Source: Prasinococcaceae sp. CCMP 1430 (lineage: Eukaryota; Plantae; Prasinodermophyta). From it: DNA of 25,276 nt. This document shows, piece after piece, positions 1 through 25,003 of the stretch (within the stretch, counting starts at the first letter, position 1; each line of letters opens with the position of its first letter). A model generated the notes under the pieces. It did not search any database. It saw only the letters and a program-made list of their open reading frames with translations, and was not told where the DNA came from. Both the position numbers and the translations under genes were made by a program. The stretch spans positions 1 through 25,276 of the forward strand of contig RQSC01000535.1 in NCBI GenBank assembly GCA_013416795.1. The letters are read 5' to 3'.

Positions 1-506
1 GTGCTCTTCACCAAGCGCTCCGTGTGCGAGTCAGAGGTCCCGCCGCGCGCGATGGCGGCGCCCGCGCCGGCGGCCGCCGTCGACGTCGTCGACTGGGAGG
101 GCACGCCCACCGGCCAGGTGCAGCTGAGCCTGACCGTGCCCGAGGGGGGCACGGCCGAGCACGTCGTCCACCGCAAGCTGGTGCAGGAGCTCGCCAACCG
201 GCGGCAGGGTTCGGCGAACACCAAGACGCGCGCCGAGGTCTCGGGCGGCGGCAAGAAGCCCTTTGCGCAGAAGGGCACCGGCCGCGCGAGGCAGGGCTCG
301 AGCCGCACGCCGCTCAAGCCGGGCGGCGGCGTCTCCTTCGGCCCCAAGCCGCGCGACTTCTCGCTCAAGATGAACAAGAAGGAGAAGCGGCTCGCCATCG
401 CGGCCAGCCTGCAGAACGCCGCGCCGGACATGACCGTCGTCGAGGACTACGACGACAAGTTCGCCGACGGGCCCGCCACCAAGGAGTTCGCCAGCGCGCT
501 CAAGAG
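1..506 (+). CDS. RPL4: Plastid 50S ribosomal protein L4 (uL4c), nuclear-encoded; 5'-partial, exon ends at a donor site, 3' exon not found in window
   Basis: uL4 signature RRQGSANTKTRAEVSGGGKKPFAQKGTGRARQGSSRTPLKPGGGVSFGPKPRDF followed by plastid-type KMNKKEKRLAI...VVEDY...TKEF. Similarity stops at AAG AG|GTGCGT (donor 507-512, same hexamer as MFS intron 1). N-terminus looks like the end of a transit peptide. Confidence 0.9.
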
Positions 507-542
507 GTGCGTTTCGCGCGCGCGGGAGACGGGCGGGACGCG

Positions 543-561
543 GCGCGCGCGCGCGCGCGCG
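543..561. repeat. (GC)n dinucleotide tract
   Basis: GCGCGCGCGCGCGCGCGCG read directly, followed by an A9 run at 569-577. Confidence 0.9.
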
Positions 562-577
562 GCGCCGGAAAAAAAAA

Positions 578-583
578 TGGGCC
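578..583 (+). promoter_or_regulatory. Possible site II-like element (TGGGCC) upstream of the complex I gene
   Basis: TGGGCC lies between A-runs about 180 bp upstream of the NDUFS1 core. TGGGCY is common in land-plant respiratory-chain gene promoters, but a 6-mer is weak evidence. Confidence 0.25.
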
Positions 584-762
584 ACAAAACCCCCGCGCGC
601 GACGCGTGGCGCGCGGGGGGGGCACGCGGGGAGAAGCGGCGCGCCCCGCGCGCCCCGCCCCCCCTGAGCTTGGACGTGGCGGGATGTTTGCACCTGCGGC
701 GACGCTCGCCGCCGCGGGGGAGGGGAGGGGGCGCCGAGGCGCCCGCGCCTCCACCCGACACC

Positions 763-2901
763 ATGTCGTGCACCGTCGACGGCCGCGAAATCCATGTCGC
801 CAAGGGCAGCACGGTGCTGCAGGCGTGCGACGCGGCGGGCGTGGACATCCCGCGCTTCTGCTACCACCAGCGGCTGTCGATCGCGGGCAACTGCCGCATG
901 TGCCTGGTGGAGGTCGAGAAAGCCCCCAAGCCCGTCGCGTCGTGCGCGATGCCGCTTGCGCCGGGCATGAACATCAAGACGGACACACCACTCGTCAAGA
1001 AGGCTCGCGAGGGCGTCATGGAGTTCCTGCTGGCGAACCACCCGTTGGACTGCCCGATCTGCGATCAGGGCGGCGAGTGCGACCTGCAGGACCAGAGTAT
1101 GATGTTTGGCTCCGACCGCTCGCGCTTCACGGAGGCCAAGCGCGGTGTCGAGGACAAGAATCTCGGCCCGCTCGTCAAGACGGTCATGACGCGCTGCATC
1201 CACTGCACGCGCTGCGTGCGCTTCGCGACCGAGGTCGCCGGCGTGCCGGAGCTTGGCACGCTCGCGCGTGGCCGCGAGTCGGAGATCGGAACCTACGTCG
1301 AGCGCCTCTTCGACTCCGAGCTGTCGGGCAACGTGATCGACCTTTGCCCCGTCGGTGCTCTGACGTCCAAGCCGTACGCGTTCACCGCGCGCAGCTGGGA
1401 GCTCAAGGCTACCGAGAGCATCGACACCAGCGACGCGCTTGGCGCGCACGTGCGCGTCGACTCGCGCGGTACCGAGGTGATGCGCGTGGTGCCCCGCCTC
1501 AACGAGGACATCAATGAGGAGTGGATCACCGACCGTGCGCGCTTCTCGTACGATGGCCTCAAGCGCCAGCGCCTCGACCAGCCGTACGTGCGCAAGGGAG
1601 GTGTGCTGCAGCCGGCGAGCTGGCCGGAGGCGCTGGGGGCCGCGGCGGCCGCAGCCAACAAGAGTGCCGAGCATGACGGCCTCAGCACAGTGGTGGGCTC
1701 GCAAGCCGACGCTGAGAGCATGACCGCCCTGAAGGACATGATGGCCTCGCTTGGGTGCAGCCGCTTCGCGTTCGAGGGCGACAATCTGAGTGACGCCGAT
1801 CTGCGCTCGGCCTACACGTACAACTCGGGCGTGGCCGCCACAAACGACGCCGACGCCGTCCTGTACGTCGGCTGCGACCCCCGCAAGGAAGCGCCCATCG
1901 TCAGCCTTTATGTCCAGCGCGGCGTGAAGGGCACGACCTGCCAGGCGGCCAACATCGGCGAGGCCCTCGACCTGCAGTACGACTGCGAGCACCTGGGCGA
2001 GACCGTGGCCGAGCTCGAGAAGATGCTCAAGAAGGGCGGCAGCGCCTTCGGCGAGGCGCTCAGGGGCGCGGAGCGCCCACAGATCATTGTTGGCTCGGGC
2101 GTGTTCAAGCGCGCCGACTCGGAGGCGGTCATGAACCTCGTGCAGCGCGTGGCCGAAAAGACTGGCGTGGTGAACGCCCAGACCGGATACAACGGGCTCA
2201 ACGTGCTTCACGCCGCCGCGGCGCGCACCGCAGCTCTCGATCTTGGCCTGGTGAATGGCCCCGGCGTTGACGAGAGCGCCGCGCCCACCTTCGTGTACCT
2301 GCTTGGCGCAGACGACTTCTCGGCCGCGCAGGTGCCCGAAGGTGCCTTCGTCGTGTACCAAGGCTCGCACGGCGATGCCGGTGCGAGCCGTGCAGACGTC
2401 GTGCTTCCGGGCTGCGCCTCGACCGAGAAGGCGGCCACCTACGTCAATACCGAGGGCCGTGTGCAGCGCACGCGCCCGGCGGCACCACTGGTGGGCGATG
2501 CTCGTGAGGACTGGACAATTGTACGTGCCCTCTCTGAGGTAGCTGGCTCGCCCATCCCACACGACGACGTGCACTCGCTTCGCGCGCGCATGGCGGACAT
2601 ATCTCCTACTTTTGACAACCTGGATGTGCTTGAGGAGGGCAAGACATGGATCACCCCCAAGGCTAAGGGCACGGTAGACAGTGCCACGCCGCTGGCGTCG
2701 GGCGTGGAGAACTTCTACCAGACAGACGCTGTGTCGCGCGCCAGCTCAACCATGGCGCGCGCTCGCGCGATGAAGGCGGGCATCACGCCCAGGGCTGGGC
2801 TCAGCGTGGCCGAGGCATCCAAGTGGGACGCCGCGCTCGGGCGCGCCAAGCAGGATCGCATCAAGGAGGCGTCTAACCCGGTCAACACACAAGCGGCGTG
2901 A
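763..2901 (+). CDS. NDUFS1: NADH:ubiquinone oxidoreductase 75 kDa Fe-S subunit (NuoG/Nad11 homolog); true start and presequence probably upstream of 763
   Basis: IPRFCYHQRLSIAGNCRMCLVE...ASC (N1b ligands), NHPLDCPICDQGGECDLQDQ (N5), MTRCIHCTRCVRF...DLCPVGAL (N4), INEEWITDRARF, TYVNTEGRVQ, NFYQTDAVSRAS. Intronless to TGA at 2899-2901. Upstream ATGs: 577 (in frame) and 684 (out of frame, before G-runs). Confidence 0.97.
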   Translation: MSCTVDGREIHVAKGSTVLQACDAAGVDIPRFCYHQRLSIAGNCRMCLVEVEKAPKPVASCAMPLAPGMNIKTDTPLVKKAREGVMEFLLANHPLDCPICDQGGECDLQDQSMMFGSDRSRFTEAKRGVEDKNLGPLVKTVMTRCIHCTRCVRFATEVAGVPELGTLARGRESEIGTYVERLFDSELSGNVIDLCPVGALTSKPYAFTARSWELKATESIDTSDALGAHVRVDSRGTEVMRVVPRLNEDINEEWITDRARFSYDGLKRQRLDQPYVRKGGVLQPASWPEALGAAAAAANKSAEHDGLSTVVGSQADAESMTALKDMMASLGCSRFAFEGDNLSDADLRSAYTYNSGVAATNDADAVLYVGCDPRKEAPIVSLYVQRGVKGTTCQAANIGEALDLQYDCEHLGETVAELEKMLKKGGSAFGEALRGAERPQIIVGSGVFKRADSEAVMNLVQRVAEKTGVVNAQTGYNGLNVLHAAAARTAALDLGLVNGPGVDESAAPTFVYLLGADDFSAAQVPEGAFVVYQGSHGDAGASRADVVLPGCASTEKAATYVNTEGRVQRTRPAAPLVGDAREDWTIVRALSEVAGSPIPHDDVHSLRARMADISPTFDNLDVLEEGKTWITPKAKGTVDSATPLASGVENFYQTDAVSRASSTMARARAMKAGITPRAGLSVAEASKWDAALGRAKQDRIKEASNPVNTQAA

Positions 2902-3001
2902 GAACAGCGAGTTCGATCGGGTAAATATTTTGTGACATTTTTCATCGCTGTTGTTGAGGCTTGCGTGAGCCGCCGACCGCGCCAGCTACAGCAGTCTACT
3001 G

Positions 3002-4670
3002 TCACAGTCTACTCGCACCCTTGCTTGGGGTGGTGTTCTCGGGCTGGGCGTCGGCGGCGGTGCGCGTGATCTTCTCCAGCGCTGTCATGCAGTACCAGCT
3101 CACGAGCATCATCACCACGGTGAGCATGAACATACCTGCGATGGGGAAGATCGAGGCATTGTAGAGGACCACACACACGAACAGATTCAGGGGTACGCGG
3201 AAGAGGTTGATGATGGTGGACCGAACGTCCTCTGGCACGTACTTGGAGCGCAGAGTCATGAGCGACGGCCAGAAGATTCCGACACAGCACTGCACCAGCG
3301 CGTGCGTGTGCGTGCGCGCGCGCGCATGCGTGTGTTGTGCGCGTGACGTGTCGATCGACCCTTTTGTCAGGTACAACGGGTGGCAAACAAAGCGCGCACA
3401 TGCACAAGGGCAGACGAGGCATGGCCTCCACGGCCAGTCCACGCGCACCTCGAAACAGAGAAACGCCATCAGCTTGATCTTGCCGCCAATCGGCAGGTTG
3501 CCACCTGGTTTGCCCCCGTCAGAGCTCGTGACAACGGGCACGAACAGGCAGAGCGCGGCCACGCCCATCACTGTGCGCATGTACGCCTCGACGCGCCTGC
3601 CTTGCGTCGCCATGAGCTTGTTGGCCAGCGCGGACCCGACCATCGAGCACGCCATCATCACCGCGAATATGAACCCATGCGGGATGTCCTCGTCGTTTGG
3701 CGACAGCGCTGGCGTCCAAAGGAACACGAAGGTGTACATGGCACCCTCAAAGCAGCTCTGGATGGCCCCTAGCAGGAGGACGCGGCGATCGGAGCGGATC
3801 GCACCGATCGCCACCTTGTACTGCTCCGCGATGTTCTGCTCGCTGACGTCGCCGAAGTTTTCCGCCCACTTGTAATAGATGATGGCCGCCCCTATGGCAA
3901 GCACGACAATCGCAGCGTCAAAAGGCGCCACTGGGCCCTGCTGCGCGGTGTACACGAGCGTGTTGGCGACCAGCCCGCTCAGGATGGCCACGAGGCCGTT
4001 GCCGAAGAAGACGGCCTTCGAGAACGTGCCACCCAGCCACTCAGCGGGGAAGTTGCGCTTGCCGTGCTCCGCCACCACCCACGCCTCGAACGCGCTGAAC
4101 AGAAGGCTCGTCGCAATACCTCCGAAGAACCTACCGAGCATCAGCACCGGGTAGCTGGGGGAGTGCTTGGTGATGCAACTGCAGATGTACGTCGCGCAGT
4201 AGAGCAGCGCCGCCTTCTTACGGCCGTACTTGTCGGCGAGAGAGCCGACGACCGTACCGAAGAGCAGCGAGGCACCAAACCCTGCGATGAAGAGCTTGCC
4301 GATGTCCCCGACGCCATAACCTTCGCCGGGGCCGCGCAGCGGGGCGTGGGCGCGTGTCAACAGGCGGCACGCGCGACCGTGGCGGTGCGGCAGGGAGCGG
4401 ACAGGGCGTGGCGCTCCCCGTTCGCGCCGCGGCGGCGCGGCCCGCTGCGCCGCGCCCGCAATAACACGCACCGTAGTGCGAGTACAGGGCGTACACGTAC
4501 GGCCCCTGCAGCCAGTCACCCGCCATCATGAGCGAGTACACCAGGAGGTAGTTGGAGCGGAAGGCCATGAACTCCTTGCTCATGCCGACGGTCCCCTTCG
4601 GCGCGCTGAGGTCCAGCGAGACGGCACCGCCGCCCGCGAGGAGCAGCAGCAGCCAGTAGAAGCCCTCCAT
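3002..4670 (-). CDS. MOT2: MFS_5 family transporter (MFSD5/MOT2; molybdate transporter or putative Golgi SAM transporter), 3 exons: 4670-4472, 4320-3449, 3289-3002, 452 aa
   Basis: FRSNYLLVYSLMMAGDWLQGPYVYALYSHYG / YGVGDIGKLFIAGFGAS, GRFFGGIATSLLFSAFEAW, FEGAMYTFVFLWTP, VGIFWPSL...R.KYVPEDVRSTIINLFRVPLN. Removing two GT-AG introns gives one continuous family-length frame. Confidence 0.93.
3290..3448 (-). other. Spliceosomal intron 2 of the MFS gene (159 nt, phase 0)
   Basis: GAG|GTGCGC donor, CCTGAC branch-like motif, TGCAG|TGC acceptor. Removes a non-homologous 53-codon insert and restores FLCFE-CCVGIFWP. Confidence 0.88.
4321..4471 (-). other. Spliceosomal intron 1 of the MFS gene (151 nt, phase 1)
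   Basis: TACG|GTGCGT donor, TTGAC branch-like motif, GAAG|GT acceptor. Joins two frames to give YSHYG-YGVGDIG. Confidence 0.88.
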
Positions 4671-5268: not shown

Positions 5269-7746
5269 ATGGTGGTGGCATCGCGCGCCGCGGCGGACGC
5301 TGCGCTCGCCGTGGTGGCAATTGCGCTCGTTGCCGTCATCACGGCCACACACAGCCCCGCCGCCGCCGAGCGCGCAGTAGTAGCGGACGCGAGATCGGCC
5401 CGCGAGGCGTTTCCGTATGGGTTCCTGCACGTTCCGAAGACGGGCGGCACCAGCGTGAAAGCGAGCTTCGGTGCGGCGGGGGTCCAGCTTCCCGGTGGCC
5501 GCCAAGGCCCGTTCCCGCTCGATTCGCTGGACGTGCGCTACGAGGCGTGCTCAGCGTGGCATCGGCCCCCCGCCGAAGTCGCTGAGCGGCGAGGGGGGCA
5601 GCTGGCCGACGAGACATTCGCAGTCGTTCGCCACCCTTACGACCGCATGCTAAGCGAGTGGCGCTGGACGCACGCACTGCTTCCACTTTTCTACGAGCAC
5701 GCCGAGGCGGCGGTGCGCGGCGAGGTGTGCCCTGAGCTCGCCAATTCGACAGGCAGGGCTGTGCCTCAGCCACCGTCACACCAGGGGTGGCCGCCGACGG
5801 ACGAGGCGGCGCGCAGGGGACGGCCCCGTTCGATGGAAACGGCTGCATTGCGATTCGTAGCGCCGCAGTCCAAGCTGAGTGCGGGCTACAGCAGCTGCGC
5901 GCAAGGTGAGAAGGGCCCATGCAAGATAGCGCGGGCCATTCCGACTAGTCGAGAGAGCGAGTGGGCGCGAGCGGCGTGCAACTGCGGCTCCTTCCGGCGA
6001 TGGGCGCAGTGCGCTGTCGAGATTGCCACCAGTCGCTTCGAGCAGCTCGAGGACTGCCACTTTTTGCCGCAGTGGCGCATTGCGCGCCACGCCACGCGCG
6101 TACATCGCCTCGAAGACGGGCTCGATGCCATGTTCAGGGACGAGGTGTCACGGGCGGTGATGAGCGGGTGGAACCCGGGGCGCGGCGTGGTCGCACGTGA
6201 TGCCAATGCGTCGACAGTTGCAGTCGTCACGGCGACGCAGCGACGTCTCATATGTCCCGCGGGGAACGACGTGGGGAGGCACTGTTTCGATCAGGCCACA
6301 TACGCCGCGGTGCACCGCCTCTTTGCGGACGACTTTGTTCACCTCGGGTACGAGGCGCACAGCCTCGACGGATTCCCCCCCACGGCCGCGGCGGAAGTGA
6401 AGGTGTCAGAGGACGCGGGGACCCTCCGCAAGCCAAGTACGGGCAGAGTAACGGCCAGGCCAAAATGGGATGACACCACAGAGCGCGAGGCGCGCGGGGC
6501 GTCGTACACCAAGGTCCTCGATGATACGGCGGAAGTGAAGGTGTCGGAGGACGCGGGGACCTTCCGCAAGCCAAGTACGGGCAGAGTACCGGCCAGGCCA
6601 AAATGGGATGACACCACAGAGCGCGAGGCGCGCGGGGCGTCGTACACCAAGGTCCTCGATGATCTCGAGAAGAGCTACGGCAGCAAAGCTACTGGCTCGG
6701 CCTTTCCAACAGCTGGCAGCATGACCACCGCAACCGCCCGCGCGGGCATTCTCGCTGAGGCCTGCCGCTCGAACGGTCAGTCGGGGGAGGCGTGGCTAAG
6801 CGACCATCGTGCGCAGGCGCGCGCGAGAGAGCATCCTCACGGGTCTGCGGACGGGGTGCAACTGGTGGCATTCTCGCTCGGGGTCCAGTCCGACGCGCTG
6901 CTGGGCGTGCTTTTGGCGTCCGCGGCGACGCAGGGCTTCCGCCCTGTCGACGTCGTCCGGCCCGCCGGCACCCGCTGGGAAGGTTTCATCCCGACCAAAA
7001 TTGTGACACTGCAGGCACATTTTGCGGCTATCGCCAGGGCAAGCCCAGAGGGGGAAGGGGTGCTGTACGCAGTGACAGATGTCGACGCTGTAGTACAGAG
7101 CGGGCCCGAAAGGCTGGAAGCGGCGTACAGAGCATTGGCTGCGCTCGCTCCGAGCGGGCGGGAGGGACCGTGCAGCGACGGCCTGCTGGTGATGGGGTCT
7201 GAGTCTCAGTGCTTCACTAATACGTGTCGAGGTGCTTGGGTGCCACCGGTCACCGACTCACGAGGCCGCTTGAGGTATGTCAACGGGGGCTTCTTGATGG
7301 GCAACGCAAAGGCGTTGGCTGGCTATTACGAGGCGATCATAGCCGAAAGCAAGCGGCGTGGTGTGAAGGCGCGTTCTGGGGATGACCAGTTGGTGGGCTA
7401 TGGTCTGGTCGGGCCCAGATCGCAGCTGCTCTCGAGCGACGCCCCGGCCGTGCGTGCGGTGAAGCATCCGCGCGCCAAGATATGCGCCGTGCTCGACGCC
7501 GACTCGACCACGGCCTTCACCATGACGGCCAAAGAGACCGGTGACAGGGACATCGCCGTCTTCAACGAGCCGGCCGGCTTCACACTGGCGCCGCTGGGGC
7601 AAGCGCCTGAGCAACGCCCGGTCATTTTGCACGTCCCAAATTTGAGAAGCCCCGCAAGGCGCCAATTCTACTGCAACGTGGCGTTCGACTGGCTCAACGT
7701 GTCGCTCACAGGCGCCGAGGCGCTCGCGACCGCCGCCGAGGCGTGA
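5269..7746 (+). CDS. Type II membrane protein: Sulfotransfer_2-like sulfotransferase fused to a PLOD-like GT-A glycosyltransferase domain
   Basis: Signal anchor AALAVVAIALVAVITA. Sulfotransferase motifs: 5'-PSB FLHVPKTGGTSV, 3'-PB FAVVRHPYDRMLSEW, DCHFLPQW, LFADDFVHLGY. C-terminal motifs TDVDAVV, MGSESQCF, RYVNGGFLMG, DDQL, VLD, PVILH follow the order of the lysyl hydroxylase GT domain (TDxYDV, FSAExxCWP, LNSGGFIG, DDQL, LD, P..xH). Confidence 0.8.
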   Translation: MVVASRAAADAALAVVAIALVAVITATHSPAAAERAVVADARSAREAFPYGFLHVPKTGGTSVKASFGAAGVQLPGGRQGPFPLDSLDVRYEACSAWHRPPAEVAERRGGQLADETFAVVRHPYDRMLSEWRWTHALLPLFYEHAEAAVRGEVCPELANSTGRAVPQPPSHQGWPPTDEAARRGRPRSMETAALRFVAPQSKLSAGYSSCAQGEKGPCKIARAIPTSRESEWARAACNCGSFRRWAQCAVEIATSRFEQLEDCHFLPQWRIARHATRVHRLEDGLDAMFRDEVSRAVMSGWNPGRGVVARDANASTVAVVTATQRRLICPAGNDVGRHCFDQATYAAVHRLFADDFVHLGYEAHSLDGFPPTAAAEVKVSEDAGTLRKPSTGRVTARPKWDDTTEREARGASYTKVLDDTAEVKVSEDAGTFRKPSTGRVPARPKWDDTTEREARGASYTKVLDDLEKSYGSKATGSAFPTAGSMTTATARAGILAEACRSNGQSGEAWLSDHRAQARAREHPHGSADGVQLVAFSLGVQSDALLGVLLASAATQGFRPVDVVRPAGTRWEGFIPTKIVTLQAHFAAIARASPEGEGVLYAVTDVDAVVQSGPERLEAAYRALAALAPSGREGPCSDGLLVMGSESQCFTNTCRGAWVPPVTDSRGRLRYVNGGFLMGNAKALAGYYEAIIAESKRRGVKARSGDDQLVGYGLVGPRSQLLSSDAPAVRAVKHPRAKICAVLDADSTTAFTMTAKETGDRDIAVFNEPAGFTLAPLGQAPEQRPVILHVPNLRSPARRQFYCNVAFDWLNVSLTGAEALATAAEA
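6389..6663 (+). repeat. In-frame tandem duplication, 2 x 138 bp (46 aa)
   Basis: Copies start at 6389 and 6527 (CGGCGGAAGTGAAGGTGTC...CTCGATGAT). Three substitutions seen: TCA/TCG, CTC/TTC, ACG/CCG. Confidence 0.95.
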
Positions 7747-8320
7747 GGGCGCGTGGGCGGCGCCGAGGGCGTCTGCGGTCGGCTCGGGAGTGCACTGCAC
7801 ACGTAACATAGTACTAGTCACTAGTCTAATGTTTGTGAGGATGAACGCTCTCCCTCTAGTAGCTAGAGAGTGCCTCCCGACTTCGACTGATGACCCTGCT
7901 TTTGCTGTCGTTGCTTAGCACCAGTTGGTGGCCTTCCCGGACACGAGGAAGGCTTCGAAGCCTTCGATCCAAATTCCTCGCCGGGTGTGCGCGCGGCCGG
8001 GGGAACCGGAACCCGCGGGCATGCATTTCGCGACGTGCAGCAATGCAGTCTCTCGAACGAAAGCATTGAAAACGCGCGTCAGAAATTTCGAGAGAGCGCA
8101 TCTCGCAGCCGCCCCGCCCGCGCGCCCCACTGGCGAGCTGCGCGCGAGCGCAAGCTGGGTTGGTTGGACGCGCCGCGTCACGCGAGCGCCTCGGCGCGGT
8201 GCAGGCCGGCCACAGCGGGTGCGACGCGCGCGCGCGCGCGCGCACAATGAGCGGAGGCGCGGGCGCGATGCGGAGGCGCCGCGGCAGTGTGTGGCGGCGA
8301 GCACGCCGCAGAAGCTGTCG

Positions 8321-9295
8321 ATGGCGTGGGGGTGGCTGGCGGCGTGCTGGGCGGCGGCGGTCGCCGCGACCGCGTCCGCGTGGTGCGCGGCAGGCGCGGC
8401 AGCCGCGGCCGCGCCGCACGCATTCGACCCCGGGCGCGACAGCTACGCAGAGCAGATCCGCGTTGTGCACGGTCACCCGGTGATCGCGTATGCGATGCAG
8501 CGCTCGGGGAGCAACCTGTGGCTCATGCTGCTGAACGAAGCGTACGGCGTGAAGAACTACGTGGGCGCGCAGCCGCCCCACGCACGGCAGCTGCAGTGCA
8601 GGGGCGACGAGAACACGCCGCTGTGGAAGCACTTTCGGCCATTCGACGACGCAGGCCTCGCAGGGAGTGGCGGCGTCGCACGGCCAGTCGCTCCGACGGC
8701 AGCGGCCATGAGGGGACTGCTGCAAGCGGACATGTGTGAGCATGGGGCAGGCTTCTACAGGCTCTGCGAGGGCGAGCGTTGGGGGAGCGAGCCCACGGTG
8801 CTCGTCATTGAGAAAGCGCTCGGCCCATGGCTGGTCTCCACGCGTGTGCTCTGCCCGAACTGCATCGCGATGGACGCCGCGCAGCCGTGCTCAAATAGGA
8901 TCCCTACAGAGGCGAGTCGAGAGAGCCTGTGGCGGCGCTTCTACACCTTCTGGGGGACGGTGGCGACCTCGGCACGGGGCGCACCTGAGGGCGAGGGTCT
9001 GCGCGTCGTGCGCGTCACGTACGAGTCGCTGCTCTACTCTCCAGAGGGATGCGCCGACGCAGTCGAGCGCGCCTACGAGGCGATCACATCCGCCGCACCA
9101 AAGAGCGGCGCCGCGATGAGGGTGTGCCGCCAATTGCACGGCGGTGGCATGAATGTGCCGAGGTCGGGCACACGCAGTATGGATGCCGTGCGCAACATGG
9201 ACATCGGGGGCGGCTGGAAGCGGTCGTTCTCCCGAGCGCGCGCCGAGGAGATCCTGCACCGCGAGGGCGAGGTCAACTCCACGTGGCCCATCTAG
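8321..9295 (+). CDS. Secretory or Golgi sulfotransferase-like protein (PAPS-binding P-loop fold), 324 aa
   Basis: Hydrophobic N-terminus MAWGWLAACWAAAVAATASAW; 5'-PSB-like IAYAMQRSGSNLW; WKH; 3'-PB-like VLVIEKALGPWLVS; VRVTYESLL (YEDL motif). Confidence 0.68.
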   Translation: MAWGWLAACWAAAVAATASAWCAAGAAAAAAPHAFDPGRDSYAEQIRVVHGHPVIAYAMQRSGSNLWLMLLNEAYGVKNYVGAQPPHARQLQCRGDENTPLWKHFRPFDDAGLAGSGGVARPVAPTAAAMRGLLQADMCEHGAGFYRLCEGERWGSEPTVLVIEKALGPWLVSTRVLCPNCIAMDAAQPCSNRIPTEASRESLWRRFYTFWGTVATSARGAPEGEGLRVVRVTYESLLYSPEGCADAVERAYEAITSAAPKSGAAMRVCRQLHGGGMNVPRSGTRSMDAVRNMDIGGGWKRSFSRARAEEILHREGEVNSTWPI

Positions 9296-11500: not shown

Positions 11501-11538
11501 CGCCCGCGGCGCCCGCGGCGCCCGCGGCGCCCGCGGCG
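11501..11538. repeat. 9-bp tandem repeat (CGCCCGCGG)x4
   Basis: Four perfect units plus CG in the intergenic region. Confidence 0.85.
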
Positions 11539-12018
11539 ATGCACTGACCGGCAAGGTGCAGGATGCGACCAACCTGTCGGGAGTCCAAAGCTCGCCGTCC
11601 CCCCCATCATCCGCCCGCCGTGTGCCGCGGGCGCACGCACGCGCACGCAGCCGGCGCCCCTTCGGAAGCGCCACGCCACCTGTCCTGCACTTTGTACCAT
11701 CAGATGGTATTTTCGGCTCTCGTTTGCAAACCAGTAAGGGTTTTATGCTTATATAGGGTCTACAATTGGCGTCTCACCGCCGCGCTGGAGCATGCGGGGT
11801 CGCCGCGGCGTCGGATCCGCGCGGGCGCCCTCGGTTTCCGCGGGGCAACTCCGCGAATCCAAGGCGCCCCGCACGCACGCACACACGATCTCCGCCAACC
11901 ACGCGCGAGCGGCACCAGGAAGAGGGCGAGCGGCGTGCGCGCCCCGCGCGCCGGCGGCGAGGAGGCGGCTAAGAGCAGCGCTCGGCCCCCGTCACCGTTC
12001 GGGCGTTCCAGCAGCTCC

Positions 12019-14253
12019 ATGGCGCCGCACCGCGTCGACAAGGTGACGCGCCGATGGGAGAGCCACATCTGGCACGACAAACGCCAGTGTTACCTGGGCT
12101 CTTTCGACACGGAGGAGGACGCGGCGGTGGCCTACGACCAGGGCGCGCTCAGGCTGAAGGGGCGCGAAAAGGCGGCGCTGAACTTCCCGGAGCGCGACTA
12201 CTCCGAGTTCGAGCGCGAGACCCAGGGCATGGGAGCGGAGGAGGCGATCGCCCACCTGCGCCGCGCGTCGTCGGGCTTCTGTCGCGGGCAGGCTAAGTTC
12301 CGCGGCGTGAGCTTCCGCCCCGCCACGAAGAGGTGGGAGGCCCGCATGTCGGGCATCACGAGCCGGAAGTACACCTACCTGGGCACCTACGATTCGGCCG
12401 CGGAGGCCGCAGCGGCGTACGACCGCGCCGCGATCGCGTGCAAGGGCAAGGAGGCAATGACCAACTTCGCCATCTCGAACTACTCGGAGGAGCTGGGGGC
12501 GCTGGCAGCGGCGTCCAAGTCGAGCCTCCGCAGCAACGATGGCAGGCCCTCCCGCGCAACGGTGGCCGCGCTGAATGCCATGTCCGCGGATTACTTCGAC
12601 AAGGAGGCCGAGCGCAAGCGCAAGGTCGCAGCGTCTACCCCCGAGAGCGCGCGCAAGCGTAGGAGGAGGCAAGCGGAGGAGCGGAAACGCGCGGGCATCG
12701 CGCGAGGCGCAGGCGCCTTTGGAGCGTTCGGCGGCATCAACAGGGATGGAGGGGCCTTTCGTCTTCAGGAGTCGCCCCGGCGTGGGCACGCGCATGGAGT
12801 TGAGTCGCAGCGACAAGCGGGTGAGTTGCACGCTGGCGGCGGGCTCGTCCACAACCCCTTCGGCGGCAGCGCCGGAGCGAATGTGCTGCAGCCGAGCGCG
12901 CGCGTCAACCTGAACGCTGCTTTCGATCAGGGAGGCAACCCGGCCAGCCCACGCCGCCTGCTGTCGTACTCGAGCGCACCTCCTCCTTACCAGCAGCTGC
13001 TGGCGGCGACGCTGCCCATTCTGGGCTCGCCGGTGGCGCCCCACGGCGGGATGCCCTTCACGCAGGCGCATGTCGCGGCGACTCTGCTGCTGACCCCGCC
13101 GGGACACGGCGACCCCGTCACCGACGAGAATCGAGGACCGCTGAGCGCTAACATTATACGCCACGAGGGTGCGGGTGCACACCTCGGGATGCCACCTGGA
13201 AATGCTGCCGCACAGGCTAAGGCGAAGCGCCGCTCGTCCATCGAGCTTTTCCCCGCGGCGAACGCCGCCTTGCACGGCCCAGAGCGCGACGGCAACGGCG
13301 TGTTGCCACCGTCTGGAAGCGAATCACCGGTGCCCCATCTGTCAGACCATTCCACGGGATGCGGGGGGGGGGCTGCCGAAATGCAGCAGCCGAGCGCCTT
13401 CGCCGAGGTCTCGCCGATTCCGGTGACACCAGCGGATCACCAACCACCTCACGACCGACCTGGTTTTGGTGGCGATGCCCAGCAGGGCGCTACGAACGCT
13501 GGTGGCAGTGGGCGCCGTGGTAATGCTTGTGCAGCTGCCGCCGAGCAGCCCGTGCCCGTGGTCTGGGACGAGCTCTTCCAAGCCGGGGGCGGAAGCGGGA
13601 ACGCGCCCCAGCCGGGCACCGCAAGGAGCGCCGCGAGTGCGGGGGATGGCGGCCGCGCAGATGCCAACGCCAACGACAGTCTGCGCTTGCCCGGGGACGC
13701 CTCGCTGCGCTCGCTGCGCTCGCTGCAGAGCCTGCGGCACCTGAGCTCAAGCTTCCAGGAAAGTCAATTTTCAAAGCTCTTCCCGCGCGAAAGCAGCAAA
13801 AGCCTCATGATGGGAGTCGATGCCACCGCGTTCGAAGAAACGCTGCGCGTTTGGCAGGACAACGCGGATGAGATGAAGACCCCGCTCCCCGGCCAGCGCG
13901 CCTCAGCGACGAACGCGGCGACGCCAGGGGCGCCGCCGGCTGCAAGGCAAGCGACCAGTGGCGCGAGGGCAGGCACGCAGGCGACGGGCGAGGACTCGAC
14001 CCCAGCCCCAACGACTGCGATATCCGGCGCGCATACCAACGCGAAGACTCCCGCAGACCTCCTGGTGAGGCCGACCCCCTTTCGTGCCGTTCCGAGCGGG
14101 CGCAAGCTCGGCGCGATCCCGAATGCCGATGAGATTGGCTCCGCTGTTCAAGCGTGGGGCGAGACCCCGGGAGCCTTGCGCACGCCGTCCTCACTCAGGG
14201 ATCTGCTGCGAGTGTTCGAGGCGGAGGGCACTGCTGCTGAAGAGCGCGGATGA
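12019..14253 (+). CDS. Double-AP2-domain transcription factor, euAP2-like; start uncertain
   Basis: R1 RWESHIWHDKRQCYLGSFDTEEDAAVAYDQGAL...LNF; linker LRRASSGFCRG; R2 KFRGVS...RWEARM...YTYLGTYDSAAEAAAAYDRAAI...TNF; basic NLS-like RKRK and RKRRRR; long low-complexity C-terminus. Confidence 0.9.
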   Translation: MAPHRVDKVTRRWESHIWHDKRQCYLGSFDTEEDAAVAYDQGALRLKGREKAALNFPERDYSEFERETQGMGAEEAIAHLRRASSGFCRGQAKFRGVSFRPATKRWEARMSGITSRKYTYLGTYDSAAEAAAAYDRAAIACKGKEAMTNFAISNYSEELGALAAASKSSLRSNDGRPSRATVAALNAMSADYFDKEAERKRKVAASTPESARKRRRRQAEERKRAGIARGAGAFGAFGGINRDGGAFRLQESPRRGHAHGVESQRQAGELHAGGGLVHNPFGGSAGANVLQPSARVNLNAAFDQGGNPASPRRLLSYSSAPPPYQQLLAATLPILGSPVAPHGGMPFTQAHVAATLLLTPPGHGDPVTDENRGPLSANIIRHEGAGAHLGMPPGNAAAQAKAKRRSSIELFPAANAALHGPERDGNGVLPPSGSESPVPHLSDHSTGCGGGAAEMQQPSAFAEVSPIPVTPADHQPPHDRPGFGGDAQQGATNAGGSGRRGNACAAAAEQPVPVVWDELFQAGGGSGNAPQPGTARSAASAGDGGRADANANDSLRLPGDASLRSLRSLQSLRHLSSSFQESQFSKLFPRESSKSLMMGVDATAFEETLRVWQDNADEMKTPLPGQRASATNAATPGAPPAARQATSGARAGTQATGEDSTPAPTTAISGAHTNAKTPADLLVRPTPFRAVPSGRKLGAIPNADEIGSAVQAWGETPGALRTPSSLRDLLRVFEAEGTAAEERG

Positions 14254-14411
14254 GGAGAAGTGGGCACGCCGTGCACCGGTGTACTAAATCATGGAGACAC
14301 AGATGCTCGCGTGCCGTCGCATGATATATCGAGCGAGAGTTGCCGCGAGCGCACGAGCGAGGCGCGCGGGTCTTATTATGGTGTCGAAAGCAAATATATG
14401 CCCGCGCCCGC

Positions 14412-14416
14412 TGTAA
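14412..14416 (+). terminator. Possible TGTAA polyadenylation signal of the AP2 gene
   Basis: TGTAA about 160 nt after the stop at 14253. Confidence 0.4.
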
Positions 14417-14780
14417 AATGTCGACCACTCGATGCACCCGCCCCAACATCGCCCACTCTCTGGGTCGGCGCGTGCCGAGGCACTACTCGCCACCTCTAGC
14501 CGGAGGCAGGCTCGCCGCCCGCGTCAGGCGCAAGCATTGCGGCCAGGCCGTCGCCGAAGTCTAGAGCGACAGAGCCATCGATGGAGCGGGATGCCATCGC
14601 ATATCCGTCCTGGGCGAGGGCCTCTGCCACCTCTGTCATCGCCGCGTCGTCAAAGCCCCAGTTCGGCTGGACTAGCAGGGTGGCGGTGCCGAGCTCATGG
14701 TCCGCGGCGGCGTCAACCACGCCAGAGGCACCGGGGTCTCGGCACGCTTGCATCCGGCGCGTGCGGAGTGTCGGGTACGG

Positions 14781-15273
14781 TAGGTGATCGAAGGTGAGCG
14801 CAACAAGGTTGCCATCCACCAGTTTATCGTCGCGATTTCCATCGGCTTCGCCCTCAACGCCGCCGCTGCTGCGCTCTTCGCCGGAGGACCGCCCGATCGC
14901 TTCGATAACCCAAGATGGAGCCTCAAGCTGGCGCTCGTCTTCCAGGCGGCCATCTTCCCGGCGCTGTGCGCGCTTTCTTTTTGTAGTGTCTGTGTCCAGT
15001 CTTGGTGTCGGTGATGACTAGGTCCGTGCGCAAGTCAGTGGGCTGGCCATTTTCGTCAGTACCGAACGAGTACTCAAACGAGTCGCTGGAGCTGGGGCCT
15101 TTGGTGTGCACGTGGTAGCCGGTGCGGCGAGCGACCTTCGCGAAGATGCGCACGAAGCGGTTATGGCGGTAGGTGCGCTCTCCAGCTGTCGACGTGCAGA
15201 CCGTGGCGTGGGCGCCGTTGATGCCTGCTGCGGAGTGGCACGAAGGAGCGTGTGACAACACTGAACGACGCAC
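14781..15273 (-). mobile_element. Probable decayed fragment of an RLE-type (CRE/R2-like) non-LTR retrotransposon: zinc-knuckle remnant plus restriction-like endonuclease
   Basis: SCHSAAGINGAHATVC-TSTAGERTY-RHN-RFVRIFAKVARRTGYHV...LRTDLVI fits the G.HA..C...RHN...RPD order. Downstream AAAAALRAK and LVALTFDHL lie in the other two frames. No RT domain seen. Confidence 0.55.
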
Positions 15274-15693
15274 TTACGTCGCAAGACCGGCGCAAGCGTG
15301 CGCTCATTTGAGGGACCGCCTGGCGCGCTTCACGTTCCAGACAGAGAAACAGAGAGGGCCGTCGGGATCCTTTTCGCGGAACTGCGCGCGCGAATCGCGC
15401 CCGTAATCACGCGGTCCCCGCGCTCGCGCGCGCCACCTGCTACCTCGCGCGACGGCCCTGGTGGTCCAATCGAATGAACCCGTCGGCATCCGGGCCGTGC
15501 CCCAGCCACAACCTGGCGAGATGGCGGACGGGGATCCAAAAAGCGCATGCAAGTCGTTGAGCAGAACGTGTCCATCACATTGCACGTGCACATTCGCATG
15601 CGTTTTGACGTCTCGGTGTTTTTTTTTGCGCGCGCGCGAAGCGACAGCGACAGCGACGGGGCGAGCCGCTGCGTGCCGCGCGCGGGCGCGGGT

Positions 15694-15767
15694 GCGGCGG
15701 CGCCACTCGGCGCACGCCAGGCGACGAGGCGCGTGCGTCCTGCCGACTTGTGCTCAACTCGCGCTCG

Positions 15768-15802
<35 letters not shown>

Positions 15803-15962
15803 GCTTCCTTCTGCGGCGCCATTCGCGTGCGGTGTGCGTGCGATCGCGGCGCCGCCGGCATTTTCGCGCGCGCTCGCGCGCGTGCAGGGCAGGGCAGGGC
15901 AGGGCGGGAGCCGCGTCGTGTGGGCGCAGCCGCGGCGGCGCCACTCGGCGCACGCCAGGCGA
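15694..15962 (+). repeat. 31-bp perfect direct repeat pair (15694-15724, 15932-15962) enclosing a C33 tract (15768-15800)
   Basis: GCGGCGGCGCCACTCGGCGCACGCCAGGCGA occurs twice, 238 bp apart, each followed within 3-4 nt by GCGCGTGCGT. Confidence 0.9.
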
Positions 15963-16052
15963 GAACGCGCGTGCGTTCTATCCAGTGCCCACCTGTCCTC
16001 AGCTCGCCCCAGTTTCTCCTTCCCCTCCCGCGCTTGCCTTTTCGGCGTCGCC

Positions 16053-18212
16053 ATGCCAGGCACTCGCGTGCGCTCCGGCGATGTCTGGAATGCGGTGAGG
16101 GGGGGCGATGCTCGCAAGCTCAGGCGGCTGCTCCGGGCGGGCGCCGACAAGGACGAGAGTGTCGCCTCTCCTGATGGTGGCAAGTTTACGGCATTGCTTG
16201 GCGCAGCGTCGATGGGCAACGCAGACTGCGTGCGATTGCTGCTGGAGGCGGGCGCCGACCCTGACAAGGGATTCCGGGGCCCAGATGGGGTCGAGTTCTC
16301 TTCGCCTGCACACATGGCAGCTCTTAGCGGGCATGCTGACTGCCTCCGAACGCTGCTCGAGGCGGGGGCCGACCGAGACATGGAAGGCGAGGACGGACTG
16401 ACTCCTGCGCTCGTTGCGGTCGACCAAGGGTGCACCGAGTGCCTGAAAATACTGCTCGAAGCGGGCGCCGACAAGGACAAGGCAGATCGCAACGGGGACA
16501 CTCCACTGCACGTCGCCGCAAGGAAGGGGCACATTGAGTGCGTCACAGTCCTGCTCGAGGCGGGCGCCGACATTGGCAAGGGTGGACTCGGGCCGGAGGG
16601 CCCAGACGACAGCGACTGGACTGCCGCACACCATGCAGCTTCTGTGGGGGGAACCGAGTGCCTCCGTGCGCTTCTCGAGGCGGGCGCTGACAAGGACAAA
16701 AAAGCAACGAATGGGGATGCCCCTACACACATTGCAGCTTGTTGTGGGCACCCTGATTGCCTCAGACTTCTGCTCGAAGCGGGCGCCAACATTGACCGCA
16801 CCGACCACGCACTCGGCGCCACGCCACTGATATGTGCGGCAGTACGCGGCGAAACCGAGTGTGTACGAGTGCTGATCGATGCGGGCGCCGACATCGCTAT
16901 CGTCACGACGGAAGGCGAGACGGCGCTTAGCTACGCCGAGAAGTACGGCCACAACGAGGCCGCCGCCTTGCTTCGCGCTGCCACTGCGCGCGCCGCGGGC
17001 GGCCCAGGACAGGCGATGGACTTCTCGCGCATCGTGTGCGTGTGGGACGCGCCGACCGGCGAGGCGGTGCACGTGCTCGAGGGACACGAGGAGTCTGTGA
17101 TTTCGACGCGCTGGAGCCCGGACGGCTCGCGCCTGGCGTCGGCGGGCGGCGACCTAACGGTGCGCGTGTGGGACGCGTGGACCGGCGAGGCGCTGCAGGT
17201 CCTCGAGGGACACGAGGATGCTGTGGACTCAGTGTGCTGGAGCCCGGACGGCTCGCGCCTGGCGTCGGCAAGCGACGACCTAACGGTGTGCGTGTGGGAC
17301 GCGTCGACCGGCGAGGCGGTGCACGTGCTCGAGGAACACGAGGATGTGGTGAGGTCGGTGTGCTGGAGCCCGGACGGCTCGCGCCTGGCGTCGGCAAGCG
17401 CGGACGAGACGGTGCGCGTGTGGGACGCGCCGACCGGCGGGGTGCTGCAGGTCCTCGAGGGACACAAGGGAGACGTGTACCTTGCGCGCTGGAGCCCGGA
17501 CGGCTCGCGCCTGGCGTCGGCGGGCGAGGACGCGACGGTGCGCGTGTGGGACGCGTCGACCGGCGAGGCGCTGCAGGTCCTCGAGGGACACGAGGATGCT
17601 GTGGACTCAGTGTGCTGGAGCCCGGACGGCGCGCGCCTGGCGTCGGCGAGCGACGACACGACGGTGCGCGTGTGGGACGCGTCGACCGACAAGGCGGTGC
17701 ACGTGCTCAAGGGGCACGACCATTTCGTGACCTCGGTGTGCTGGAGCCCGGACGGCTCGCGCCTGGCGTCGGCGAGCCACGACAGGACGGTCCGCGTGTG
17801 GGACGCGTCGACGGGCAAGCGAGTGCGCGTGCTCGAGGGACACACGAATTTCGTGTGGTCAGTGTGCTGGAGCCCGGACGGCTCGCGCCTGGCGTCGGCG
17901 GGCTGGGACAAGACGGTGCGCGTATGGGACGCGTCGACGGGCGAGGCGGTGCACGTGCTCGAGGGACACAGCAATTCCGTGTACTCGGCGTCCTGGAGCC
18001 CGGACGGCTCGCGGCTGGCGTCGGCGAGCTTCGACAGGACGGTGCGCGTGTGGCGATTCACTTTAGGACTGCCTGGCATATACCAGCGCTTGCGCTCGCG
18101 CGAAGTCCGGAGTCGATCCACTCGAGCGCACTGGAGCACTCAAGCGGCGCACGCATGGGCTTCTAGGCGAGAGCTCGCGCGCGGCAATGGCAGCAGCTCC
18201 GCTCCTCCGTAA
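16053..18212 (+). CDS. Ankyrin-repeat (about 9) + WD40-repeat (8) protein, 719 aa
   Basis: Repeated TPLHxAA..G...C...LLEAGAD units at about 16075-16980, then eight 42-aa VWDA.TG...VLEGH....SVCWSPDGSRLASA..D.TV units. Single open frame. Confidence 0.9.
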   Translation: MPGTRVRSGDVWNAVRGGDARKLRRLLRAGADKDESVASPDGGKFTALLGAASMGNADCVRLLLEAGADPDKGFRGPDGVEFSSPAHMAALSGHADCLRTLLEAGADRDMEGEDGLTPALVAVDQGCTECLKILLEAGADKDKADRNGDTPLHVAARKGHIECVTVLLEAGADIGKGGLGPEGPDDSDWTAAHHAASVGGTECLRALLEAGADKDKKATNGDAPTHIAACCGHPDCLRLLLEAGANIDRTDHALGATPLICAAVRGETECVRVLIDAGADIAIVTTEGETALSYAEKYGHNEAAALLRAATARAAGGPGQAMDFSRIVCVWDAPTGEAVHVLEGHEESVISTRWSPDGSRLASAGGDLTVRVWDAWTGEALQVLEGHEDAVDSVCWSPDGSRLASASDDLTVCVWDASTGEAVHVLEEHEDVVRSVCWSPDGSRLASASADETVRVWDAPTGGVLQVLEGHKGDVYLARWSPDGSRLASAGEDATVRVWDASTGEALQVLEGHEDAVDSVCWSPDGARLASASDDTTVRVWDASTDKAVHVLKGHDHFVTSVCWSPDGSRLASASHDRTVRVWDASTGKRVRVLEGHTNFVWSVCWSPDGSRLASAGWDKTVRVWDASTGEAVHVLEGHSNSVYSASWSPDGSRLASASFDRTVRVWRFTLGLPGIYQRLRSREVRSRSTRAHWSTQAAHAWASRRELARGNGSSSAPP
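17034..18053 (+). repeat. Coding tandem array, 8 x 126 bp WD40 units plus a short ninth start
   Basis: Units start at 17034, 17160, 17286, 17412, 17538, 17664, 17790, 17916 and 18042 (partial). The 33-nt core CTGGAGCCCGGACGGCTCGCGCCTGGCGTCGGC is identical in 6 units, with one mismatch in units 5 and 8. Confidence 0.96.
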
Positions 18213-18619
18213 GAAGCGTGTCGTGAGACCGCTCGCGAACATCGCCGCGTCGACCGCCCTCCCTTGCCCTCCCCCCCCTTTTGGCGGTGCGGATGGGTCG
18301 CCACGGGCCGTGACATCGCTCGTAACGCACCGGCCGCGTCCGCGGCGCGGTCCATCGCGCCCCTCTTGGGCGCCGAAGTGCATGCGCGCTCACCACGGCG
18401 CTCGCGCGGCTCCGCGGTTTCGCGGTTTGTTCGGAATTCGACGCGACATGACGTGGCTTCCGGCGGCGCCGATCGCAGCTCGCGCGAACAGGGCCCGGGC
18501 GCTCGGGGCTGTGGCGGCGCGGGCGCCGCCACTCCGCCCGCTGCAGCCTCCTCCCAACACACACACGTACGCTCGCACCGCCCCTCTCTCTTCACTCTCG
18601 CTCTCGTCCATCCGCCGCG

Positions 18620-19237
18620 ATGGCGCTCCTGCGCAAGGCCTTCGCGCTGTGCGCGCTCGCGGGCGTCGCGGCGCTCGCAGCGACGGCGCCGAGCGCGCGC
18701 GCCGACGCCGAGCCCAAGGTGACGCACAAGGTGTACTTCGACATCGAGGTCAACGGCGCGGCGGCGGGCCGCGTCGTGATGGGTCTGTATGGTGATGTGG
18801 TGCCCAAGACCGTGGAGAACTTCCGCGCCCTCGCCACCGGCGAGAAGGGCGTCGGCAAGGCCGGCAAGCCGCTCCACTTCAAGAACAGCGTCTTCCACCG
18901 CATCATCCCCAACTTCATGATCCAGGGCGGCGACTTCACGCGTGGCGACGGCACCGGTGGCGAGTCTATCTACGGCGCCAAGTTCGCAGACGAGAACTTC
19001 GACCTCAAGCACACTGGCCCGGGCACTCTCTCGATGGCCAACGCCGGCCCCGGCACCAACGGCTCGCAGTTCTTCATCTGCACTGTCAAAACGCCGTGGC
19101 TCGACGGCCGCCACGTTGTCTTCGGCAAGGTCATCGAGGGCATGGACATCGTGCTCAAGATCGAGTCGCAGGGCTCCGGCTCGGGCAAGCCCAAGGCCAA
19201 GGTCGTCATCGCTGACTCGGGCGAGATCGAGGCCTAA
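18620..19237 (+). CDS. Secretory-pathway cyclophilin-type peptidyl-prolyl cis-trans isomerase (cyclophilin B-like), 205 aa
   Basis: Signal peptide [21 protein letters not shown]; [63 protein letters not shown]. Confidence 0.97.
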
Positions 19238-19327: not shown

Positions 19328-19981
19328 GCATTGCACCGAAGGCGCGCTCTCGCTGCCGATTTTGAACATGACGGCGCTCTCCTCGCGCGCATGATTTGCA
19401 CACGTGATCGCACACCTCGCCAAAGCCACGTCGCAAGAGGATGGGGTGCAAACAGCCCTTCAAGAAATGTTAGCAAACCCCACCCGCCCCATCTGGAGGC
19501 TTGCTTCTCGTCGGCGTCGCCCTGCTCGCCGAGCTCAGCGCGCCTTGTGCGGCCTTTTGTGGCCGCGCCACCACCCCGCCACGACGACCGCTGCGAGCGG
19601 CAGCGCCTTGGTCATCTTGTGTTGTCGCTTCTCAGACTTCATCACATTTACCCACGGGCGCCTCTTTCTGGTACAGTACTTCTAGCTGGCAGAGCAGCTG
19701 CATTCCGCCTTTGTTGGCCCCCGCCGCGGCGCTTTCGTTTTGATGGGGGGCGGGCAGCCGTTTCCGTTTCCGTTCGTAGCGCGCGGTACCCCTTCGCGCC
19801 CGCGAGCGCCCCCGCGCCACGCACTCCACCCGGGCATCCGCGTCCGCGTTCGCCACAAGGAGCGCCCACGCCGGCGCGGCTGCGAGCGCGCTCGAGCGCG
19901 CCGCGTCAGGGGGCGCCTCGCACAACGCCCGCGCGCCCGCTGGCGCGAGGTCGGGCGCGTCAGCTGGCGCGGACGTGGGCC

Positions 19982-24952: not shown

Positions 24953-25003
<51 letters not shown>
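24953..25003. repeat. Poly-C homopolymer (51 nt)
   Basis: Read directly; lies upstream of the ubinuclein ATG. Length may be a sequencing or assembly artefact. Confidence 0.85.

Follow-up and report, generated by a model that had tools for sequence, protein, structure and literature searches.

The window analysed here is a stretch of 25,276 nt from the green alga Prasinococcaceae sp. CCMP 1430 (contig RQSC01000535.1 of assembly GCA_013416795.1). It contains a gene that joins an ankyrin domain to a tandem array of eight WD40 units, whose shared framework is interrupted by a few hypervariable codons. The array is an instance of the already known highly repetitive WD40 (HR-WD40) design of fungi, bacteria and protists; what is new here, and most informative, is that the gene arose as a chimera and lies in a strain-specific segment. 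The parts of the gene are the following:

16053-18212, plus strand: ankyrin-WD40 coding sequence, a single uninterrupted open reading frame (ORF) of 719 amino acids (aa) with a TAA stop at 18210-18212
16053-16986, plus strand: ankyrin domain, eight repeats and a cap, homologous to an ankyrin + zf-MYND family
16987-17033, plus strand: unique linker of 47 nt, unmatched in paralogs; AlphaFold2 (AF2) pLDDT of 65-67 at the N-terminus of the propeller construct
17034-18053, plus strand: WD40 array, eight 126-bp units and 12 nt of a ninth, a predicted 8-bladed beta-propeller
18054-18212, plus strand: C-terminal tail of 52 codons, non-repeat, of non-coding-like composition

The most plausible start of the ORF is the ATG at 16053, because this codon coincides with residue 1 of P0247, a paralog of the ankyrin + zf-MYND family. 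Seven in-register repeat copies, spaced by 99-120 nt, are found in the ankyrin domain. In the tail, the GC content at third codon positions (GC3) is 60%, against 92% in the array, and the AF2 pLDDT at the end of the construct is below 50.

Tandem Repeats Finder gives 17034-18053 as an array with a period of 126, 8.1 copies and 84% matches; a super-period of 378 bp is weak, its fit being only marginally better than that of 126 bp. The array is in frame with the long ORF. Cut into slices of 126 nt, with unit k starting at 17034 + 126(k-1) and codons numbered within the 42-codon unit, it yields eight WD40 units of 42 aa and the first four codons of a ninth. Pfam likewise places eight WD40 repeats on eight stretches (PF00400, E = 1.9e-101), preceded by ankyrin repeats. 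The three analyses agree with a preliminary description of the locus, made from its letters alone, on the eight 126-bp units.

The framework of the units is well kept. The amino acid is constant in all eight units at 22 of the 42 codons, and the tetrad residues H18, S36, D40 and W4 are invariant in 8/8. A 32-nt framework core recurs in every unit, exactly in six and with one mismatch in two, while shuffled sequences give no match. Mean identity between units is 83% in nucleotides (range 77-95%) and 72% in amino acids (range 60-93%). The preliminary description called this framework DNA near-identical, a wording too strong for such identities, a synonymous rate (dS) of 0.15 and synonymous variants at eight framework codons.

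Variation is concentrated, as had been noted, after the Gly-His pair and around the conserved Asp. Codons 19, 20, 21, 23, 39 and 41 each take five to seven amino-acid states across the eight units, and the per-codon table reproduces all the peptide strings first quoted for these two places. Codons 7, 10, 11, 13, 25 and 26 show three residues each, and codons 12-14 covary, defining two unit subtypes (GTG CAC GTG and CTG CAG GTC). W, Y, F, R, D and H are frequent at the hypervariable codons, whose third positions, unlike those of the framework, are unbiased. The reported excess of T-ending codons among them is real, with 10 of 48 against 1 of 288 elsewhere in the units (Fisher p = 1.5e-8); nine of the ten are found at codons 20 and 21 (xAT, xCT), so the excess reflects few independent events. 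Since the array's GC3 equals that of the adjacent cyclophilin gene, its codon bias is not special, though the hypervariable codons lack that bias. We considered GC-biased conversion as the source of the bias and set it aside as inseparable from the ordinary bias, which that neighbour also displays.

Synonymous and non-synonymous (dN) rates, computed by the Nei-Gojobori method over 28 unit pairs, separate three classes of codon:

Framework, 29 codons: dS 0.15, dN 0.039
Six hypervariable codons: dS 0.84, dN 1.28
Seven moderately variable codons (c-d loop and strand d, 7 and 10-13; strand a, 25 and 26): dS 0.06, dN 0.40

The framework thus has a dN/dS of 0.28, whereas dN at the hypervariable codons is about eight times the framework dS. 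Such an excess of contact-codon change over the framework synonymous rate is not predicted by plain duplication and neutral drift. The non-synonymous excess anticipated in the preliminary description appears in this comparison, but within the hypervariable codons themselves dN/dS is only 1.2, with rates that are saturated.

An AF2 model of the array, built from an alignment with the eight-unit segments of 28 homologs, is confident (pLDDT 91.5, pTM 0.88) and has 33 strands. Over the full length, the folds that match it best are those of 8-bladed propellers: ODA16 (TM 0.88), Tako8, Rsa4, TBL1XR1 and Fbw7. With the PF00400 hits and this closed 8-blade model, the array belongs among the WD40 beta-propellers. 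In the secondary structure of the model, codons 19-21 fall in the d-a loop, strand a has codon 23 as its second residue, and the conserved Asp of the b-c turn stands between codons 39 and 41. The assignment to the top face comes from this secondary structure together with published WD40 topology, not from model coordinates. In a V/L/I-R1-R2-V/L/I motif, the rule of Wu et al. places R1 directly after the first hydrophobic residue and R1-2 two residues before R1; D-1 precedes the tetrad Asp (PMC3419727). The bulge motif here is V22-x23-S24-V25, which makes R1-2 codon 21, R1 codon 23 and D-1 codon 39; by this rule, the three codons are exactly the three canonical top-face hotspots. All six of the most variable codons are among the 11 top-face loop positions (hypergeometric p = 9e-5), so that the variable sites, once mapped, do cluster on one predicted face.

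In any WD40 propeller, blades normally differ from one another at R1-2, R1 and D-1 (PMC3419727). The unusual part of the array is therefore its homogenised framework, not the location of the variation. The same observation fits a scaffold for a fixed partner, in which contact residues are under purifying selection for one constant ligand and only the scaffold is homogenised by gene conversion. The low, saturated dN/dS of the hypervariable codons agrees with such a scaffold, as do pieces of the array that recur identical or one letter off in independent sequencing runs. We nevertheless find it unlikely: the turnover of units reaches the contact codons too, since the five after GH and D-1 are all the same in units 2 and 5; the hypervariable codons lack the framework's codon bias; and the gene is missing from 19/19 wild contigs that span its site, which argues against a conserved housekeeping interaction.

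Among known proteins, the array resembles first of all the HR-WD40 group. Hu et al. 2017 counted 305 such proteins in prokaryotes, fungi and protists, with an internal identity of at least 0.7 and diversity at predicted hotspots (PMC5587647). At a mean internal identity of 0.72 the array lies above that cut-off, its Asp-His-Ser-Trp (DHSW) tetrads are conserved, and its entropy is highest at codons 19-21, 23, 39 and 41. It thereby shares with Nostoc punctiforme 2ymu and Thermomonospora PkwA (5yzv) the level of identity, the complete tetrads and a diversity confined to hotspots; 2ymu, the Nostoc 'highly repetitive propeller', is also the closest solved structure by sequence (E = 6e-163). The HR-WD40 proteins are, however, mostly bacterial or fungal, usually carry a kinase or a STAND nucleoside triphosphatase (NTPase) and often have at least 14 repeats, while the window gene comes from a green alga, has an ankyrin partner domain and is strain-specific.

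The best protein matches to the array, 55-60% identical, are NACHT-WD40 proteins of Penicillium, NB-ARC- or nSTAND-WD40 proteins of Pseudonocardiaceae and Actinomadura, and kinase-WD40 proteins of Planctomycetes. For the NACHT, NB-ARC and nSTAND proteins the similarity extends over all eight units. We computed per-position entropy over eight units in 28 fungal NACHT-WD40 and bacterial NB-ARC- or kinase-WD40 arrays; the mean profile follows that of the window array (rho 0.73, p = 3e-8), with recurrent maxima at positions 20, 21, 23, 39 and 41. These proteins differ from the window product in their length of 1,000-1,260 aa and their NTPase or kinase domain, and none of the listed matches covers the ankyrin half.

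The likeness to the HNWD receptors HET-E, HET-D and HET-R of Podospora anserina, on which the preliminary description rested, is real in part. Both have a 42-aa unit, a homogenised framework and a predicted interaction face that carries the variation. The HNWD positions of high dN/dS are 10, 11, 12, 14, 30, 32 and 39 (PMC12222747). With a register shift of 9, codons 19, 20, 21, 23, 39 and 41 become HNWD 10, 11, 12, 14, 30 and 32, an identical spacing in which six of the seven positions coincide; the seventh (39) falls on codon 6, an invariant Ala here, next to codon 7, which varies. The rest of the architecture differs. Pfam detects only Ank/Ank_2 and WD40-type domains in the 719-aa product, and no NACHT, NB-ARC, HET, TIR, kinase, death-fold or other NTPase or effector domain; the central NACHT and the N-terminal HET domain of HNWD are both missing, the ORF opening directly with ankyrin repeats. 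HNWD proteins have about 11 repeats arranged as two 7-blade propellers, against one 8-blade propeller here, and an internal identity of 80-100%, against 72% in amino acids (83% in nucleotides). Dyrka et al. 2014 define repeats of high internal conservation by an identity above 85% over 100 aa or more (PMC4986451), a level which only the pair of units 2 and 5 exceeds, at 93%, the mean being 72%. The repeat type, unit length and place of variation of a HET-E-like array are thus present, but the gene is not a HET-E-type NOD-like receptor (NLR) and falls outside HNWD.

The array could still serve a diversifying receptor for virus, pathogen or non-self, in which units shuffled within and between paralogs would give rise to new specificities, and binding would set off defence or death through partners that the ankyrin half recruits. 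Several features agree with this reading: the shared hypervariable positions, the closest sequence relatives in NACHT, NB-ARC, nSTAND and kinase proteins, a presence/absence polymorphism of the locus such as immune-receptor genes often have, and the residue composition and unbiased third positions of the hypervariable codons, which suggest recent change. Against it speak the missing oligomerisation and effector domains and a PADLOC analysis of the gene that returned generic repeat matches only. No allelic diversity, no polymorphism in the number or order of units and no exchange with paralogs was seen, and nothing that ties the gene to viruses or to non-self was found. IMG/VR has no match to the 32-nt framework core, and on this ground a viral origin of the array was rejected; in the JGI metagenomes the sole match, L012, is a soil bacterial WD40 gene that meets the WSPDG-RLAS motif by chance, neither an ortholog nor a paralog. 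The WD40 domain alone, used in a protein search, retrieved no paralog with this framework and nothing above 62% identity, the best value in either of two protein searches. We hold such a receptor to be quite unlikely, although the proposed recognition role is plausible by analogy.

Only 6 nt separate units 2 and 5, and their post-GH contact codons and D-1 are identical, which points to a recent duplication or conversion of a whole unit. The proportion of synonymous differences at invariant residues is 0.126 in the array and 0.247 in the ankyrin repeats of the same gene, and so half as high. Of 351 informative site pairs, 170 are phylogenetically incompatible with a single tree. The shuffling of units put forward in the preliminary description did not, however, find support in a PHI-type permutation test for recombination among units, which is non-significant (p = 0.10).

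The gene is a chimera, with the WD40 array in place of a zf-MYND end. Its N-terminal ~300 residues (16053-16958) are 72-77% identical to P0247, P0248 and P0009, with which it shares the start codon, and the homology includes ~130 nt of the 5' leader. It stops at ~16958-16986, where the paralogs run into their MYND zinc finger and the window gene continues into linker, array and tail. From this stop and from the in-phase borders of the array, the gene looks like an ankyrin-family member whose C-terminal module was swapped for a WD40 cassette. In a protein search, the ankyrin half retrieves just two proteins, both of the ankyrin + zf-MYND type; we detected no credible zf-MYND remnant 3' of the array, the best tblastn match (E = 0.4) lying outside the segment described below. 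The leader contains a repeated element:

15917-15979, plus strand: 63-nt upstream element, with a second copy at 15679-15741 (86% identity, direct-repeat family D5), also present in the leader of the ankyrin paralogs

The two copies flank a C33 homopolymer at 15768-15800. A TARA contig (L011) aligns from 15923 onward at ~87%; at its positions 385-4614 it carries tandem ankyrin-repeat genes with ~86% DNA identity to the ankyrin half of the window gene, one of which is called as an ankyrin + zf-MYND protein of 642 aa. From these sequences, the ankyrin family appears to be multi-copy with exchangeable C-terminal ends.

A swap of this kind might be a young accident with little or no function, a WD40 cassette from another array having landed, with a variation pattern inherited from its donor, in an ankyrin gene of an accessory segment that was rearranged. 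This is a rather improbable account, and one that several observations fit: the in-phase array borders, the unique linker, the non-coding-like tail, a multi-copy element 0.7 kb upstream, the absence of the segment from wild contigs, the absence of the exact protein from a collection of 15 billion proteins and the length of chance ORFs in GC-rich DNA. It is opposed by the AF2 model, a confident closed propeller of eight blades that has just the strands it requires, by the framework dN/dS of 0.28, by probable transcript coverage and by the intact ankyrin part and leader. In the same collection, eleven alternative start-codon versions of two segment genes gave no match either, those starting with GTG or TTG being unable to match because their first residue is not read as Met. 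A feature search of the ESM Atlas returned only generic ankyrin clusters, with scores up to 0.86.

The gene occurs in 20 public runs from 17 studies. In four of the public runs, contigs match 15933-17082 letter for letter and without a gap, then stop at 17082 and at the 32-nt cores. Beyond that point, independent runs hold pieces across the junctions of units 1 and 2 (17115-17261, one difference) and of units 6 and 7 (17749-17882, no difference), and across the boundary of units 5 and 6 (17659-17742, no difference); their support extends to the sequence locally and stops short of the unit order across identical cores. The number or order of units may in part be an artefact of assembly, a view compatible with the other readings. 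A 2025 study reports that such arrays are not reliably reconstructed from short reads or Illumina assemblies (PMC12222747), and the contig breaks conform to this. The recurring junction pieces and the coherent closed propeller formed by eight units make an artefact very improbable.

Two runs whose RNA status was guessed by the tool (X19 and X20) cover 15916-17082 and 18041-18222, and not the upstream spacer that DNA runs cover, which suggests that the gene is transcribed without splicing.

We found the gene to be strain-specific, in a segment without counterpart in wild contigs. The segment comprises:

11895-18390: presence/absence segment of 6,496 bp with an AP2 gene, a multi-copy element and the ankyrin-WD40 gene
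12019-14253, plus strand: AP2-domain gene with two AP2 domains (Pfam match)
~14821-15335: multi-copy element with a 116-aa minus-strand ORF (14923-15273), no Pfam match

With the downstream cyclophilin (18620-19237) as a handle, we retrieved 22 contigs from marine metagenomes and public runs. Nineteen span the site (L001-L010, L013, L015-L020, L022 and L023), representing four cyclophilin alleles and at least 17 samples. Each of the nineteen is 95-99% identical to the window in both flanks and lacks 11895-18390. Most of these empty contigs join ~11894 directly to 18391, the fillers among eight junctions being AATGA (six), GAGA and TGA; in L015 and L022, ~160-200 bases between ~11500 and 18391 have no match. 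Among the contigs retrieved, where carriers are possibly under-represented, as short-read assemblies would break at the array, none showed the right-hand junction of the segment.

Because the empty alleles are broad and diverse, the data favour an insertion in the window's lineage. Against this, a probable AP2-gene transcript contig would start ~70 nt outside the segment, which would fit a deletion. Transposon-like ends were ruled out, since neither terminal inverted repeats, long terminal repeats, other terminal repeats nor a target-site duplication was found at the segment ends.

The multi-copy element lies ~0.7 kb upstream of the ankyrin-WD40 gene. In DNA runs its contig depth is 5-6x that of its surroundings, and in probable RNA runs it is found inside longer contigs; run contigs depart from the window from ~14730. 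In DNA runs X1 and X5, the AP2 part (13100-14819) has ~2x the contig depth of the ankyrin part (15933-17082), a depth summed over collapsed contigs and not interpretable as paralog copy number. The AP2 part shows two fixed differences from the window (13791 A>G and 14066 T>C), and the ankyrin part is identical. Elsewhere in the window, L001 lacks a 1,262-bp piece (7773-9034) that is present in L013, and one copy of a 138-bp tandem repeat (6389-6663); a 260-bp piece (19585-19844) is missing from L001 and L004, and several contigs lack a 172-bp piece (11514-11685) or have it in strongly diverged form. At 24953-25003 there is a run of 51 C.

We now propose that the gene is a chimeric accessory gene whose product, carrying an 8-bladed 'highly repetitive' WD40 propeller, is probably a cytosolic two-module adaptor with a variable top face; we offer this tentatively, at somewhat less than an even chance. 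Tandem duplication of a 42-codon unit would have produced the blades, and duplication or conversion at the level of the unit would keep them similar, the scaffold with its His-Ser-Asp-Trp tetrad being held near constant. The residues pointing outward on the top face, in the d-a loop (19-21) and at R1 (23), D-1 (39) and D+1 (41), differ from blade to blade and would together form an asymmetric ligand-binding surface able to change fast. The first ~300 residues and the leader derive from the ankyrin + zf-MYND family, and in the place of the zinc finger stands a WD40 cassette. Through its conserved ankyrin half the protein would tether the partner typical of that family, and the top face of the propeller would bind a variable ligand. 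The anatomy of the repeats, the fold, the placing of the variation, the contrast in rates, the chimeric origin and the presence/absence difference are shown by the data; continuing homogenisation, selection for diversity and the adaptor function are inferred from them.

Several observations weigh against this proposal. A saturated dN/dS of only 1.2 at the hypervariable codons gives no formal demonstration of positive selection. Homogenisation is moderate (83% in nucleotides, dS 0.15) and stays under the 85% aa criterion of PMC4986451, and the recombination test lacks significance. No allelic or repeat-number variation was seen, the inter-core pieces being identical or one letter off in runs X5, X19 and X20, and with all four runs' contigs ending at 17082 and at the cores, the unit order comes from the window assembly alone. 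The RNA status of X19 and X20 is a guess of the tool, and contig ends can be set by repeats. Long chance ORFs also occur in DNA of 68% GC. Finally, the array opens (V-C-V-W-D) and closes (V-R-V-W) at the same point of the unit, and the tail behind it is non-coding-like, which is what a recent, possibly accidental fusion would be expected to leave.

The sensors of fungal NLRs and of many bacterial STAND proteins are built on the principle of a homogenised repeat array whose contact residues are hypervariable. We found no earlier description of such arrays in this group of algae in the open-access literature. One broader possibility is a NOD-less receptor family in which homogenised WD40 cassettes whose contact residues change fast would be recombined onto different N-terminal modules, such as the ankyrin domain of the window gene; the genes, gained and lost between strains, would recognise viruses or conspecific cells. 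We consider it distinctly improbable; if true, it would amount to innate recognition on the HET-E repeat principle without the NLR switch. For the ankyrin-WD40 gene itself, the segment provides a presence/absence marker, testable by polymerase chain reaction, in an ecologically abundant alga. The design stands here apart from any NTPase switch, joined to an ankyrin domain of borrowed origin and placed in a segment missing from wild populations, and its occurrence in a marine green picoalga suggests that the principle is used outside the NLR context.

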